Shown: positions 10,001-56,966 of the stretch, piece by piece
How the letters are laid out: each line of letters begins with the position of its first letter
How positions within the stretch are numbered: position 1 is the stretch's first letter
NCBI GenBank assembly: GCA_000708835.1
Contig: DF237283.1
Coordinates: 1 to 64,000 of the forward strand
Direction: 5' to 3'
Length of the DNA stretch: 64,000 nt
From: Klebsormidium nitens
Lineage: Eukaryota; Plantae; Klebsormidiophyceae
The notes under the pieces: model-generated
The model's database searches: none
Seen by the model: only the letters and a program-made list of their open reading frames with translations
Told to the model about the DNA's origin: nothing
Position numbers and translations under genes: made by a program

Positions 10001-13000
10001 GACTGATGACAAGGAACAGGAAGGGGACGGAAAAGTGGAATCTGCCCTTGGAACGATAGCGGAGCTTCTGGAAGCGCCTTTGTCGACCTTTGACGCTTCC
10101 GAGGGGGTGGCGAGCGCCCTGGAAGTTTCCACCCAGGAGACGTTTGTGACTGCGACGCAGGAGAGCGTCCCCGGGGGAGAGTCTCAGTCGCAGACAAACA
10201 CCCCGTTGGAGGAAACGGAGACACAGCCTGTGCTGACGCAGGAAACAGATCCTGAAATGGAGGAGCTGACCCCCCCAGAACGAGAAGTGGGTCCGAGCGA
10301 GCAGGAAACAAGTCATACGGAGCCGGAAAGTGTGCCGATTTTGGCAGAGGAAGACATTCGGGGGGGGCCATTGGAAGGTGGGGTGTTTCCGAATACGGCG
10401 CTTGCTGAAGAAAGGACCGGAAGGGGAGCGGCGGAAGGAGGACTCGAGAAGGAGGAAGGAACGAAGGAAGACGAAGAGATGGCGGATGCAGATGTGCACG
10501 AACGAGAAGGAAAGGACGAAGGGGGAGAAAAGAGGGAAATGGAAGCCGTCGATTTGGGGGGGGCTTTGAGGACTGCGGAACAGGTCGCAGAGGAGATAAC
10601 GGTGGGGGAGATCGAAATGGGGGGCGGCGAACAAACGGCAGCAGAGAAGAGGGACAGCCTGCTGGAGCATGACGTGGAAGTGCCAGCTACGAAGCGCCGG
10701 AGGGGATCCCCCGAGGCGGACGATTCAACCGCCCCCACAGAAGCGGGCGTTTCTGTGGCCGAGCAAGAGCCGGGTCTCACCCAAACGATTGAGAATATGT
10801 TCACCGCTGTGGGGGGTTCTCCGGGCATCGAAACGGGGGGATTCTTTGCCACTGATTTTGGACCCCCTGCCGCAGCTGACGAGGTTCCAGTGGGGCAGAA
10901 CGGGCGTGAGACAGCGGACGGGGCGGGGGCCATCTCTAGGCTGGCCTCCGCAGAGTCGGCTGACGTCATGATGGCCTCTGCTGACGTCGAAACGCCCTCT
11001 GCTGACGTCGGAACGGCCGCTGCTGCCGTCAGACCGGCCTCCGCCCGTCTCCCGCCGCAGGCGATCGTCATCGAGGACGCCCTCGCGCTCGCTGACGGGC
11101 TGCTGACGTCACCGACGCTCGGCCTCGGGATCGAGGGCCACTTTCCGCCGACGCCGACGCCGGAGGGGCCGTGGAAAACTGCCGCAGCTGCAGGTGAACC
11201 TTTTGGCCAATCGCATCCGTCAGATTTGCAGACCAACTGTCAGCTTGGAACGCTTTATCGTGGTGGCCTTAGTAAGCGTGCTAACTGCAGTTACTGGTGA
11301 CAAGACTGACAACTTTTAAACCTTGTAAGCTTAGTTTCAAATTGGAACCTTAACCAGGTTTGGTCAAGGGAATGTGGCACAAATTTTGATATCGGCAGCC
11401 GACAGTACCGTATGAAAATGTCGTCTACGTCTTTGTCCATGTCAGTCAACGCAATACAGATCTGCTTATACAGTAGTGCTTTCTAAGACGAAGCTACTGG
11501 TATGTGTTTGCGCCTCATGCTGCAGTGTTCGTTGACACGAGAAAGTGCAACTGGGAGCAAAGAGAACTTAAGTTTGAAGAGAAGCAATGGGCATCTCTGC
11601 AGGTTGACGGAAAGGCGGTACAAGGTTCGCATGGAATCGACTAGGAGCAATCCTAGGCCTGACGATATAAGGATAGTCCAGGCTTTTCCGCAACAGTATT
11701 TGGACACATTCTAGAATCCGTTCTGGACAGAATGGACAATAATCCGGTCTTGCCTCCGCCTGAAAACAAGACACCTTCGATTCTTCCACAGGTGATGTCA
11801 TCGACACCCACGAACGCGTCGACGCTGACGTCAGCTTCGAGCCGGGCACTCAGCCTCTCGAGCAGGAGCACGAGGGCGGCGACACGGACCTGGAAGACGC
11901 TGACGTCATCCCGGATCGGGAGCGCGGCGCCCCATCACACACGCGCCGNNNNNNNNNNNNNNNNNNNNNNNNNNNNNNNNNNNNNNNNNNNNNNNNNNNN
12001 NNNNNNNNNNNNNNNNNNNNNNNNNNNNNNNNNNNNNNNNNNNNNNNNNNNNNNNNNNNNNNNNNNNNNNNNNNNNNNNNNNNNNNNNNNNNNNNNNNNN
12101 NNNNNNNNNNNNNNNNNNNNNNNNNNNNNNNNNNNNNNNNNNNNNNNNNNNNNNNNNNNNNNNNNNNNNNNNNNNNNNNNNNNNNNNNNNNNNNNNNNNN
12201 NNNNNNNNNNNNNNNNNNNNNNNNNNNNNNNNNNNNNNNNNNNNNNNNNNNNNNNNNNNNNNNNNNNNNNNNNNNNNNNNNNNNNNNNNNNNGGGCTGCC
12301 TGCCGAAGCAGAGGGGCAGTTCGAGCAGCGCTCTGGCGGGGGGGACCGCCAGCTGGCGAGCGGAGCGGATGCGACCGCCCCAGAAAGGTGCGTTGAGAGT
12401 TTGATGTCGGTAGCAACAGCCGCCTTTGCGTGAAAACCTTGCTTAGCAAGGGGGTTTGGGTGTCTCCAACGGCCTGCGGCGGTCGTTTCTATTGGTTCAG
12501 TCTCGCGGCATACGAGGTCATTCTCAGGTCCCTGTCTCTTGCACTCGATGATAGGCCAAAGGACATTGTCAATGCGATGCATACTGGATCTGCTGTCAAG
12601 ATTCAGGTCGCCTCTTCTACGAGAGCTACGAGCCGACCCAAGCTCATTGGGCTTAGCAAACGTCGGGAGTGGGCCAAACCCACTCTGCCTACTCTTATCT
12701 ATCGTTCACCAGCTCTTTCCCCCTTATGCAGTGCTCTGTGGACGGATAATCCAGACGCTCGCGAGGATCTTAATGGGCTGTCGCTGCAATCGCGGGCCGC
12801 AATAGAGAACGCAGCTCGTGTTCAAGCGGCTCAAAGGTACGTGGCAAGTCGGGAAGAAGACTTGCAGAACCTGACAGTGGATGTAGCCCGAGTAGAGGCG
12901 AGAAACAGGAGGTTAGAGGCGGAAAAGGAGAATCTAACGGCGGAAACGGCGGAGCTGAGGGCGGCCAGAGCGGAAACGGAAGCGGAAAGAGAGGCGGAAA

Positions 13001-51976: not shown

Positions 51977-54195
51977 TCAATCGGACTCTTTCTTCTCGGC
52001 CACTTTCTGGACGAGCCACCCCATGCAGGGCGCGACTCCCCCGTCCTCAGTCACCCTCACCCCGGGTAATCCGGCGATAAGCTGACAGTCGCTTATGGCC
52101 CCATGGTTATCGAGCTTGAAAGGGCACTTCACATAACCCTCGGGAATGTCGCTCGCATCGGTTCTCCCCCGTGCAAAGTCTGCCTTTTGCAAACCGCCAG
52201 TGTATGGGAAGAAAAAGCGCACCCATCCCTTCAAAGAGTACTGCCCCCCCGACCCGTAGGATTCTCTTGTAAGGACCTGGCTCCACCATACGCTATCCGG
52301 TCTGCCCTCATACGTGCTCAGAAGCTGCTGCACAACGGTCTCCAAATGGTCCAGCCACCAGTCGAGGCCGATATCCAATTGGCGGAGGCCACGTGTCTTC
52401 TCCAGGAGGCGCTGCCAGTCTTCTTGGGTGCCGTGCAGGGTCACCTGGTTCGGACGAGAAAGGTTTGGATAATCAGCGTACACCAGCGAGAAATGACGTC
52501 ACCTCGGGGGTTTTGAATTCACGAAGAGAAGGCTTGCGAGCCTGCAACGAAACTGCCCTTGCAGTCTCAGCATTCATGCCGCCAGACTCTCTTACCAACT
52601 AGAAAGTCTTGTTTCCAACAATACGAGAGCCAAAGCCGGAAACTCAGAACTCTCATAATCAAATGTTGCTTCTGAGTTCTAAGGAACCTAGCCCGACGCT
52701 TTCGTCGGTTGAAAGGAGACGTCAGCTTCCCCACAATTGAGCCTTTCGACAGAGTCATTTCGAAAATACCAACGAAACGAAGGTAAGACCTCTGGACCAA
52801 ATACGATCCGCAGCCGATCGGTTGAAGGCTTGCCGCTTATTTGTAACATGATTGAGAAAGCTTGAATAAGTAGTGGAGAAATCCACCTGGTAGAGGAGCA
52901 CTTGAAATGATATAAGCTGATGAATTCCGATAACTTCCTGATGGAAGCCATGAAGCAGTACTTCAGCTACAAGTTTGAGCTCTCCTGCGGAATCCCAAAG
53001 GCAAGTCGTCTCACAGAGGCCAAGCAGTCTTGGAGATGACGTCAGTGGTGGAGAAGTCGTTCGTCAGCAGCTGACCCGCCCCGGCCTTGACCTTCTTGTC
53101 CAGCTTCTGTGTGATAAGGGCGACGCACTTGGGCCAATCCAGCAGACGTGAGTCGCCTGCGCCAAGGAAGAGGGTGCAGGACGTAATTACACATGATTCC
53201 CAAATACTCTTCCTCATTGACTTTTTAATCCAATAAGGATGCCAAACTGTTCACTTGATGCGGTCTTCAGCTGACAAGGAAGCAATGCATATGGTGGTCA
53301 GCATAGCGATCCATTGTCATTGATCAATAATAAATCCCGGCAAAATTTTACATGCAGTTCGACATTTGGCAAGTAGTTCCTTAGATGTTAAGGCCATGTG
53401 GAGTCCTTGTTGAACAAATGTTCCTTCACTTTGAACAAACACATCCGATTTGAGGACGCAACTGTGCTGCAGACATATCAGAAGCAGAGTAAAAGCCATT
53501 AAACATCTTGATATTCAAAACGTAACTTTGTCAAGATCATCTACCGCTCTTGTTCACTTGTTTTCAGTCGCAGATTCATGAGCGTCAAGAAAGGTGATAG
53601 TAAGCGAAGATAATCATATTGAATCTTTGTCTGGCAATATTCGAAAATTTCAGTTCGAGGCTCGCCTGGAAGGAAGGAAACATTCACGTTGACCGCAATT
53701 TCCTCCTGCCCGTCATGATCAACAAACACCCGCCGGTATTTCTCCGCGTTCTCTCCGTGCTGCAGATGTCTGCTGACGCCCTGACAGATCGTCAGCCACA
53801 CGTCATCAGGTCTCAGGTGCAGGTGCAGGTGTCCACTGTACGCCTTCTCAAAGGCTGCCAGCAGACCATTGTTGCAGCCAGGCCTCTTGAGAACGTCCCC
53901 TGGCGAGCAGTCAAAGATGACGTCTTCCTGCTTCGGGCGCAGGAGCGAAATCCAGCAATTCTTCAGAGGCTCAACAAGGCCGGCGCACTGCCTTGTGTAG
54001 TCGCTCTTTGCGCGGCGGAGCTTTCCCTTCCGCGGCATATTTGCGCCACTCCTGCAGGTCAAACTTTGGTCGCTCGGCAGTGACCTCCGTGCAGGGAGTG
54101 AGAGTATCCAGCTCGATGTCGGACGCCAGAACTTGGGTGCTCATTGCTTCCTCTATTTTATCTGGCGCACTGTCTGTAGAAATTGGGTGCTTCAA
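51977..54195 (-). pseudogene. DUF4419-family gene disrupted by an intragenic inversion (or misassembled)
   Basis: DUF4419 motifs NGLLAAFEKAYSGHLHLHLRPDDVWLTICQG...AEKYRRVFVDHDG, DWP...NDFSTT, and VTLHGTQEDW...WW...GSG...LKGW are on the minus strand. The connecting LMEAMKQYFSY...CGIPK lies on the PLUS strand at 52938-53000. Confidence 0.8.
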
Positions 54196-55250: not shown

Positions 55251-56966
55251 CTAAACTCCCGACGTCCAGTCCCCGGGCGACAGCCGCTCGTCGAAGTCCG
55301 CCAGCATCTGCTTATTCAGCTCCTCGTTGTGCTCTTCCGCCGCCTTATGCTCGAGCGCCTCCTCATACGCGATCGTCTGCCTGCGCAGCAGCAACGTCAG
55401 CACGGACACCGCCAGGCTCATTTGGACGGGCCGTCCGAACAGCGTCCGAACAAAGGATGCGCCGAGGTTTGAGAGTTTAGCGCCGCGGATGGCCTGGCCG
55501 GCGACACGTGTCAGCGGGAGGACGAACGGCGCCGCCTGGAGAAGGGCCCGCCAGGATTGTGTAAACAGTTCCCACTTGGGGATTGGCAGCGGAAGCGGAA
55601 CGCCGAACGGCAGCGGAAGGAGCACCACGCGCGAGAAGTCCAGTGTGAATGCGTACGGGTGCAGGCGCCAGTTGAGCACCGGGCAGAGCGCGCATAGGAA
55701 GTCGGCCGCGAAGCGCGCGTCCCAGCTGACGTCACAAGGGGGAAGGCGCGCGCGCGCCGCGCGCGCCATGGTCTCCAGAAAGCGGAAGACGTCCCACAGG
55801 AGACTGGCTGCGAGGGCGGCGCAGAGGGCGACCTCGAAGCGAGCGGCGAGGGGGCCGTGGAGCCACGTGGCAGCGTTTGCTTGGGAGAGAGAGAGGGAGA
55901 GGAACGGAAGGGGCTGCGGGAGAGCGAGAAAGCACACCGCGTTGAAGAGGAGTACCAGGGTGTCGAGCGCGAACGGGTCTGTAACGCAGTAGTGGAGCGC
56001 CTTGAGCTGCGTTACGAACTGGGTGCGGACCGTGATGGCGTACAGGATGCCCGTGAGGAGGGGCTTGAACACCAGCTGCGCAGCCCCCCTGAAAAGATAC
56101 GCGGGGAACAAGTTTGAGGGAGGGGTGCTGCTGGGGGGGTCAATTGGGCTGGGCAGAAGGAGGGGGGGCTTGAGCTGCGACTTCCCTGTGATGGATTTGT
56201 AGTAGAACGTCTTCTTGCGCTTGGGGTCGAAGAGGTTGTGCCATTCTGGAGGCAGGCGTTTGTCACGCGGCTGGAACTGCCCCGCCTCTGCGGCCCGCTC
56301 TAGTTCGTACCAGACGATCACCCGCGCGGCAGTCAGCCAGGTCAAGCAGGTCAGGATAATGTGGGGAAACCACGTGGCGGCCTCCAAGCTGAAGGAGAAA
56401 CCGATGAAGCAGGCGAACAAGAGCCCGGTCACAGACACAGCCGACCACAGAACAGTCAGTGGAGTGGGGCCCCATTTGGTCGGGGGTTGGTGCCCCGAGC
56501 TGTCAGAGTCCTTTGGGCTTGTTTGGCCCAACCCCTCAAACGCTGAACAAGTCTGCTTGACCCTCTTCGGCGTGTCGGTGGTGCGGATGCTAGGTGACGT
56601 TAGGAAACGAGAAGCTGACGCGGAGCTTGGACTGATTTTGTTCAAAGTGTGAAACCTTGCGTCCTTTGAGCGGCTTTGGAAAAAGAGAGCTGGAATGCTG
56701 CCAGCAGGCGACAATGAAGCGTCACGCGAGCAAGAAGACGTTTTCGTCATAGATCGTGTATGCCTCCCCCTTTGGATGGTCTGCTTGACGATCTGCGGTG
56801 GACAAAGATCCCACTGCTTTGTGAGAGCGTGTTGAGAAGGGGGCAAGCGTTCTGCATATTGTTGTGCGCTAATGCGTGCGCCACTTGACTGCGGCTGCAA
56901 ATCATGGTGCAACACTGCAGCCTGTCCCAACGCAATGCTGCGTCTGCTGATGGATGCGGCCGCCAT
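55251..56966 (-). CDS. Intronless multi-pass membrane protein with a WW-like domain and a transit-peptide-like N-terminus
   Basis: 571-aa ATG-initiated ORF. The N-terminal ~140 aa are Ser/Thr/Arg-rich. Several hydrophobic segments are present. LPPEWHNLFDPKRKKTFYYKSITGKSQLKPP at ~56162-56256 fits the WW pattern, with the second Trp replaced by Leu. Confidence 0.75.
   Translation of the reverse strand: MAAASISRRSIALGQAAVLHHDLQPQSSGARISAQQYAERLPPSQHALTKQWDLCPPQIVKQTIQRGRHTRSMTKTSSCSRDASLSPAGSIPALFFQSRSKDARFHTLNKISPSSASASRFLTSPSIRTTDTPKRVKQTCSAFEGLGQTSPKDSDSSGHQPPTKWGPTPLTVLWSAVSVTGLLFACFIGFSFSLEAATWFPHIILTCLTWLTAARVIVWYELERAAEAGQFQPRDKRLPPEWHNLFDPKRKKTFYYKSITGKSQLKPPLLLPSPIDPPSSTPPSNLFPAYLFRGAAQLVFKPLLTGILYAITVRTQFVTQLKALHYCVTDPFALDTLVLLFNAVCFLALPQPLPFLSLSLSQANAATWLHGPLAARFEVALCAALAASLLWDVFRFLETMARAARARLPPCDVSWDARFAADFLCALCPVLNWRLHPYAFTLDFSRVVLLPLPFGVPLPLPIPKWELFTQSWRALLQAAPFVLPLTRVAGQAIRGAKLSNLGASFVRTLFGRPVQMSLAVSVLTLLLRRQTIAYEEALEHKAAEEHNEELNKQMLADFDERLSPGDWTSGV

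Follow-up and report, generated by a model that had tools for sequence, protein, structure and literature searches.

In Klebsormidium nitens, a minus-strand gene of the DUF4419 family breaks off within an exon, and the end of that exon can be read at the same place on the plus strand. This arrangement raises the question of how the exon end came to face the wrong way: by a single mutation, by a flip that still differs among cells or strains, by a programmed switch, or by an error in the assembly. We addressed it in a window of 64,000 nucleotides (positions 1 to 64,000 of contig DF237283.1), using the gene model, the relatives of the gene, the breakpoints, the accompanying lesions and the rate of change in the remaining coding sequence. 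Newbler was used for the K. nitens assembly, on 454 and Illumina data totalling about 5.4 Gb (PMC4052687). The window has one scaffold gap, a run of 344 N at 11949-12292, which lies 40 kb from the flip.

Results

Structure of the minus-strand DUF4419 gene

The minus-strand locus is a three-exon DUF4419 gene (Pfam PF14388). The PF14388 profile was searched piece by piece, with ORFs taken singly and a gathering cut-off of 25 bits, and four pieces cover profile positions 1-303 in order (Table 1). The kept part of exon 2 alone stays under the cut-off, with 16.1 bits. Among the relatives found, P0008 is the closest; this 395-aa protein comes from a Klebsormidium subtile transcriptome (EukProt). Its identity with the window is 91% for exon 2, 84% for exon 3, 77% for the domain part of exon 1, and 73% for the flipped piece. 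Exon 3 is intact and aligns to P0008 by tblastn with no gaps. At intron 1, a glycine codon split as G/GC is required for the reading LPG-DSRLLDW, which is the one present in P0008.

Both introns of the gene have GC donors, namely CAG/GCGAGC (53660-53665, minus strand) and AAG/GCAAGT (53001-53006, plus strand). If GC-AG introns account for about 1% of introns, as in most eukaryotes, it is unusual for both introns of a gene to be of this type. The read-through residues of P0048 (...RRQV...), an ORF from an ENA contig of a relative, fit the same GCAAGT donor. Intron 2 is present in the window's gene and probably in K. subtile-like genomes as well. P0009, P0011, P0005, and P0049, which are unspliced calls from JGI contigs, run directly from CGIP(Q/E) to V..LHG; with this continuous reading, intron 2 is therefore absent in these more distant relatives.

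Table 1. Positions of the DUF4419 gene parts, the breakpoints and the lesions in the window
Feature	Position	Strand	Description
Exon 1	53666..54144	minus	ATG at 54144; N-terminal extension and profile 1-62; Pfam E 1.9e-17, 64.1 bits
Exon 1/intron 1 boundary	53665/53666	minus	CAG/GCGAGC
Frameshift zone (+1) in exon 1	54005..54030	minus	One extra base in GGG/AAA runs
Intron 1	53157..53665	minus	509 nt, GC-AG type, donor GCGAGC
Exon 2, kept part	53022..53156	minus	135 nt, ends ...GDSRLLDWPKCVALITQKLDKKVKAGAGQLLTNDFSTTDVISKTA; profile 64-107, E 0.0079, 16.1 bits
Exon 2, flipped end	52927..53000	plus	74 nt, codes (S)DNFLMEAMKQYFSYKFELSCGIPK; profile 110-132, E 2.8e-6, 27.5 bits
Intron 2, flipped start	53001..53021	plus	First 21 nt, including GC donor GCAAGT at 53001-53006
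Intron 2, remainder	52445..52926	minus	482 nt, original orientation, acceptor AG at 52446-52445
Exon 3	51977..52444	minus	VTLHGTQEDW...KESD and stop; profile 132-303, E 6.4e-28, 98.5 bits
Left breakpoint microhomology	52925..52926		TT
Right breakpoint microhomology	53022..53023		AA
Altered codons	52929..52937	plus	GAT AAC TTC (D-N-F), 2-10 nt from breakpoint; close relatives Q-I/V-V
Cryptic donor made by the flip	53009..53014	minus	GTGAGA; first intron base 53014

The end of exon 2 lies on the opposite strand

As assembled, the minus strand of exon 2 reads ...TTDVISKTA and then W-P-L-stop, with the stop codon at 53011-53013. The plus-strand ORF 52920-53039 encodes MNSDNFLMEAMKQYFSYKFELSCGIPKAS..., and profile positions 110-132 of PF14388 are encoded on this strand only, exactly closing the gap left on the minus strand. 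By tblastn (frame +3), the plus-strand piece matches P0008 over residues 216-240. The re-inverted reading was obtained by translating a virtual flip of 52927-53021. Read in reverse, this segment continues KTA with SDNFLMEAMKQYFSYKFELSCGIPK and then reaches GCAAGT; the flipped piece comprises the terminal 74 nt of exon 2 together with the initial 21 nt of intron 2, GC donor included. Splicing the restored exon 2 to exon 3 in phase 0 yields CGIPK-VTLHG, as in P0008. The distance from KTA to VTLHG is 25 residues in both the restored reading and P0008, and the codon GCT T/CC is restored exactly. At the protein level, the segment corresponds to the ancestral sequence reverse-complemented in place, and on the exon side the flip is length-neutral, with no net gain or loss.

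A sequence-only reading of this DNA had placed the end of the exon on the opposite strand, and the sequence together with the filled Pfam gap confirms it. The same reading had proposed that reversing 52927-53021 restores an open frame followed by GCAAGT, and this is borne out, with the spacing found in P0008. It had further described an in-phase splice to VTLHGTQEDW at 52447; the phase is right, but the position is not, as exon 3 starts at 52444.

We considered the plus-strand piece as an inverted duplicate of the exon end and rejected this, the forward copy being absent. Local alignment of the exon end to intron 2 revealed no decayed copy there either: the best score was 20 versus a shuffle mean of 17.8, and 58 of 300 shuffles scored equally or higher.

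The forward orientation is ancestral

P0008 is uninterrupted through ...DVISKTASQIVLMEAMKQYFTYKIELGCGIPKVTLHG..., and the forward orientation is also found in the genomic unspliced ORFs P0048 (ENA contig), P0049, P0009, and P0011 (JGI), as well as in all 38 aligned members of the DUF4419 family. Because all of these are in the forward orientation, the flipped state in the window is the derived one. P0048 shares a 9231-bp ENA contig of a relative with P0007, and the two show apparent frameshifts at two places, in the CGIPK codons and within exon 3; these reflect either an indel-prone assembly or a decaying orthologue.

K. nitens has six annotated DUF4419 paralogues, which are 48-58% identical to P0008. 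Among the annotated proteins returned, none comes from this locus and none is identical to the window's exons. The locus thus seems to be unannotated in K. nitens, and the knockout accounts for the absence of an annotated protein here. Metagenome contigs were scanned with the exon 3 alignment, using two peptide patterns conserved in every relative; 188 stretches matched the patterns, and none of them encodes a relative.

The family as a whole is found in Klebsormidium (at least six paralogues), in fungi, and on a giant-virus contig of 1.6 Mb (P0038). In the literature searched, DUF4419 is named in two papers only, in both of them in passing. The PF14388 profile has no match among PDB sequences. 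P0008, the intact ortholog, was modelled (pLDDT 77.4, pTM 0.74), and its predicted structure gave no fold match, the best Foldseek E being 0.08 and the best Z in the wide VIA-align comparison 4.6.

Breakpoints of the flipped segment

The TT and AA at the two breakpoints are the sole symmetry directly at the segment edges, and a match of this kind has a chance expectation of 1/16. On account of it, the exact cut is ambiguous, and the inverted stretch measures between 95 and 99 nt. A search between and around the two segment ends found no inverted match of 7 nt or longer, in agreement with the earlier claim that the breakpoints share TT/AA only, and no duplication was found at the breakpoints. 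The palindrome TGACGTCA occurs at 53037-53044, 15 nt from the right breakpoint, in the exon 2 codons for T-D-V-I. A second copy of it is located inside intron 2, at 52494-52501.

The junction 12-mer (52927-52938) was also examined as templated filler. It has no nearby copy or reverse copy, and its 4 matches in the window with at most two mismatches compare with 3.8 expected; this candidate was rejected.

Lesions aside from the inversion

The sequence-only reading had seen no further clear lesions in the flipped part and the other exons. Two further changes contradict it. The first is at the start of the flipped piece, which reads S-D-N-F; the close relatives all have S-Q-I/V-V at these codons, so that three radical replacements stand in a row (Q217D/I218N/V219F). 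All 13 Klebsormidium-type homologues keep the Q and the V at the altered sites, and the kept part of exon 2 deviates at none of its 15 conserved columns. Given the lineage-specific rate in exon 3, about 0.05 per site, a run of three such changes side by side has a chance of about 1e-4. The SDNF cluster could instead be later decay or 11-nt filler.

The second change is a +1 frameshift in exon 1. By tblastn, residues 6-56 of P0008 match frame -2 and residues 55-172 match frame -3, and the three-frame translation agrees. The frame from the ATG at 54144 hits a stop after 57 codons. Translation from the ATG at 54039-54037 could bypass the frameshift, and the product would then be short of about 45 N-terminal residues. 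The frameshift may be a genuine second lesion, or else sequencing miscounted a homopolymer. It is less certain than the flip, because GGG/AAA runs are the context in which 454 errors occur.

These junction codons bear on whether the flip was made by the assembler or consensus, with the true genome in the forward orientation and exon 2 intact. An artefact of this kind would suit a draft scaffold assembly with N runs, put together from 454 and Illumina reads, and it would agree with the good preservation of the remaining coding sequence. We nevertheless regard it as unlikely. The segment ends have no inverted repeat longer than 2 nt that could mislead an overlap or graph assembler, and the nearest gap is far away (40 kb). 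Moreover, one 454 read is long enough to span a 95-nt flip, so reads containing both junctions must underlie the consensus, and a pure assembly flip would leave the three conserved junction codons unaltered.

The lesions also weigh on the proposal of the sequence-only reading that the exon end is a reversible ON/OFF element, that is, a programmed inversion comparable to a eukaryotic nuclear "inverton". A length-neutral flip whose reversal restores frame and splice phase exactly is what such a switch would look like, and the gene belongs to a multi-copy family, as is the case in some phase-variable systems. Yet the restored exon would carry SDNF in place of the invariant SQ(I/V)V, so the ON product is not conserved, and the reading frame upstream is shifted. 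The segment is not bounded by inverted-repeat recombination sites, and the five large ORFs within 10 kb, taken unspliced, contain no recombinase domain but only a WW domain. In addition, 95 bp is shorter than the persistence length of DNA (about 145 bp), which makes looping synapsis implausible (PMC8755829). Site-specific recombination is, judged from these sequence features, ruled out in practice. The switch has nothing positive to support it and several points against it in sites, size, SDNF, and frame, and we consider it very improbable.

The WW domain is in the neighbouring ORF 55251-56966 (minus strand, 571 aa), which has a single such domain (E 3e-5, under the gathering score) and hydrophobic stretches.

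Flipping a segment toggles gene expression in Hin/Gin/Fim-type invertons and in the yeast 2-micron FLP/FRT system, as it would in a switch at this locus. These bacterial and yeast systems depend on specific inverted-repeat sites plus a recombinase and usually involve hundreds of bp or more, features that were not found at the Klebsormidium flip.

Consequence and age of the inactivation

In the assembled arrangement, the mRNA is predicted to read KTA-W-P-L-stop, and the protein would be cut short near residue 215 of 395. The predicted loss amounts to 180 of about 395 residues and takes with it 8 of the 11 columns that are invariant across the family alignment (Y227, F228, C236, G245, D249, W250, W294, and G313). 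Rescue by splicing or trans-splicing was evaluated and rejected. Use of GTGAGA, the sole cryptic donor, and joining to exon 3 gives CTG TGA, hence a stop; skipping of exon 2 shifts the frame; and the plus-strand piece lacks a usable in-frame acceptor. Because of the KTAWPL stop, the loss of invariant residues, and the absence of an in-frame splice rescue, the gene is dead as assembled.

The age was assessed by a relative-rate count that compared the window with two sister sequences, used three outgroups, and covered 126 shared columns of exon 3. The window has 3-7 unique changes, versus 2-5 unique to the intact sisters. As exon 3 displays no rate acceleration, the inactivation is young relative to the species split; the count upholds the earlier view that the event is recent. 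The DUF4419 locus is, as far as its sequence tells, a young pseudogene and one member of a multi-copy family.

A recent event may also be one that has yet to be fixed. The flip could be an unprogrammed polymorphism still segregating among cells or strains, with no mechanism to flip it back. Vegetative Klebsormidium cells are haploid and clonal, and haploid clonal growth lets a mutation born in culture reach the consensus. The exon 3 rates fit such a young state, whereas the frameshift and the altered SQIV codons suggest that this copy fell into disuse a while ago. We hold the polymorphism to be improbable, slightly more so than the assembly artefact.

Discussion

The flipped exon end is probably the result of a real, recent, and one-off inversion in place, 95-99 bp long, produced by a template switch, by MMBIR, or by end-joining of two breaks. 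Inactivation of the template-switch type, which the sequence-only reading had listed among its explanations, is favoured by the derived state, the absence of recombination sites, the junction cluster, and the second lesion. We infer that a replication route (template switch or MMBIR) is slightly preferable to end-joining.

In the replication route, with a fork moving toward higher coordinates, the growing strand would leave its template at 52926 during replication or break repair. The TT of the nascent ...GAATT end would pair with the AA at 53022-53023 on the opposite strand, about 95 nt would be copied leftwards along that strand, and a second 2-nt match would allow the return to the original template. 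The codons at 52929-52937 would lie where synthesis resumed after the jump, and a low-fidelity start of synthesis would explain their changes. Alternatively, two double-strand breaks 95 bp apart may have been rejoined the wrong way round by end-joining.

Both the type of event and its origin have precedents. In the four-point template-switch model, event type 1-3-2-4 is the only case that inverts a fragment alone (PMC5453318), and pure microinversions with a proposed MMBIR origin are documented (PMC8755829). According to the model of Loytynoja and Goldman 2017 (PMC5453318), one switch-and-return inverts the fragment only, and clustered differences are explained as well. The primate events to which they applied it range in size from a few nucleotides to some tens.

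The microinversions in the stringent set catalogued between human and chimpanzee (PMC8755829) are likewise reverse complements in place, without net gain or loss, and the origin proposed for them, template switching or microhomology-mediated BIR, is the one proposed here. Their breakpoints sit at short inverted homology, to which the TT/AA of the Klebsormidium flip may correspond. [quoted passage not shown] A flip of 95 nt with 2-nt homology falls outside that catalogue, which speaks against the one-off inversion favoured here. Most primate microinversions have no internal mutations, whereas the Klebsormidium flip has a cluster of changes at one end (PMC8755829). A further contrast with the primate set is that the Klebsormidium flip ruins a coding exon together with a splice donor.

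As a microinversion, the flip belongs to a known class of mutation, and by itself it is an ordinary young knockout of one paralogue in an uncharacterised family. Its value is that of a clean, datable nuclear microinversion of about 95 nt that has almost no flanking inverted repeat and exceeds the lengths catalogued in primates. The cluster of mutations at the junction bears on template switching versus MMBIR versus end-joining. The locus carries a warning for annotation as well, since such lesions escape gene finders and are shown by aligners as clusters of substitutions.

More tentatively, and with a chance that we put as rather low, the flip may be the smallest visible example of an unusually active process of small inversions in K. 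nitens, in which pieces of about 0.1-2 kb would be flipped in place with junction homology of at most 6 bp and several genes, well preserved in other respects, would recently have been knocked out. If so, this process would be a possible signature of double-strand break repair in a desiccation-tolerant, haploid, clonal alga. If the several small inversions of this genome are all real, the frequency at which they arise and the make-up of their junctions would show the spectrum of repair in a streptophyte that diverged early.
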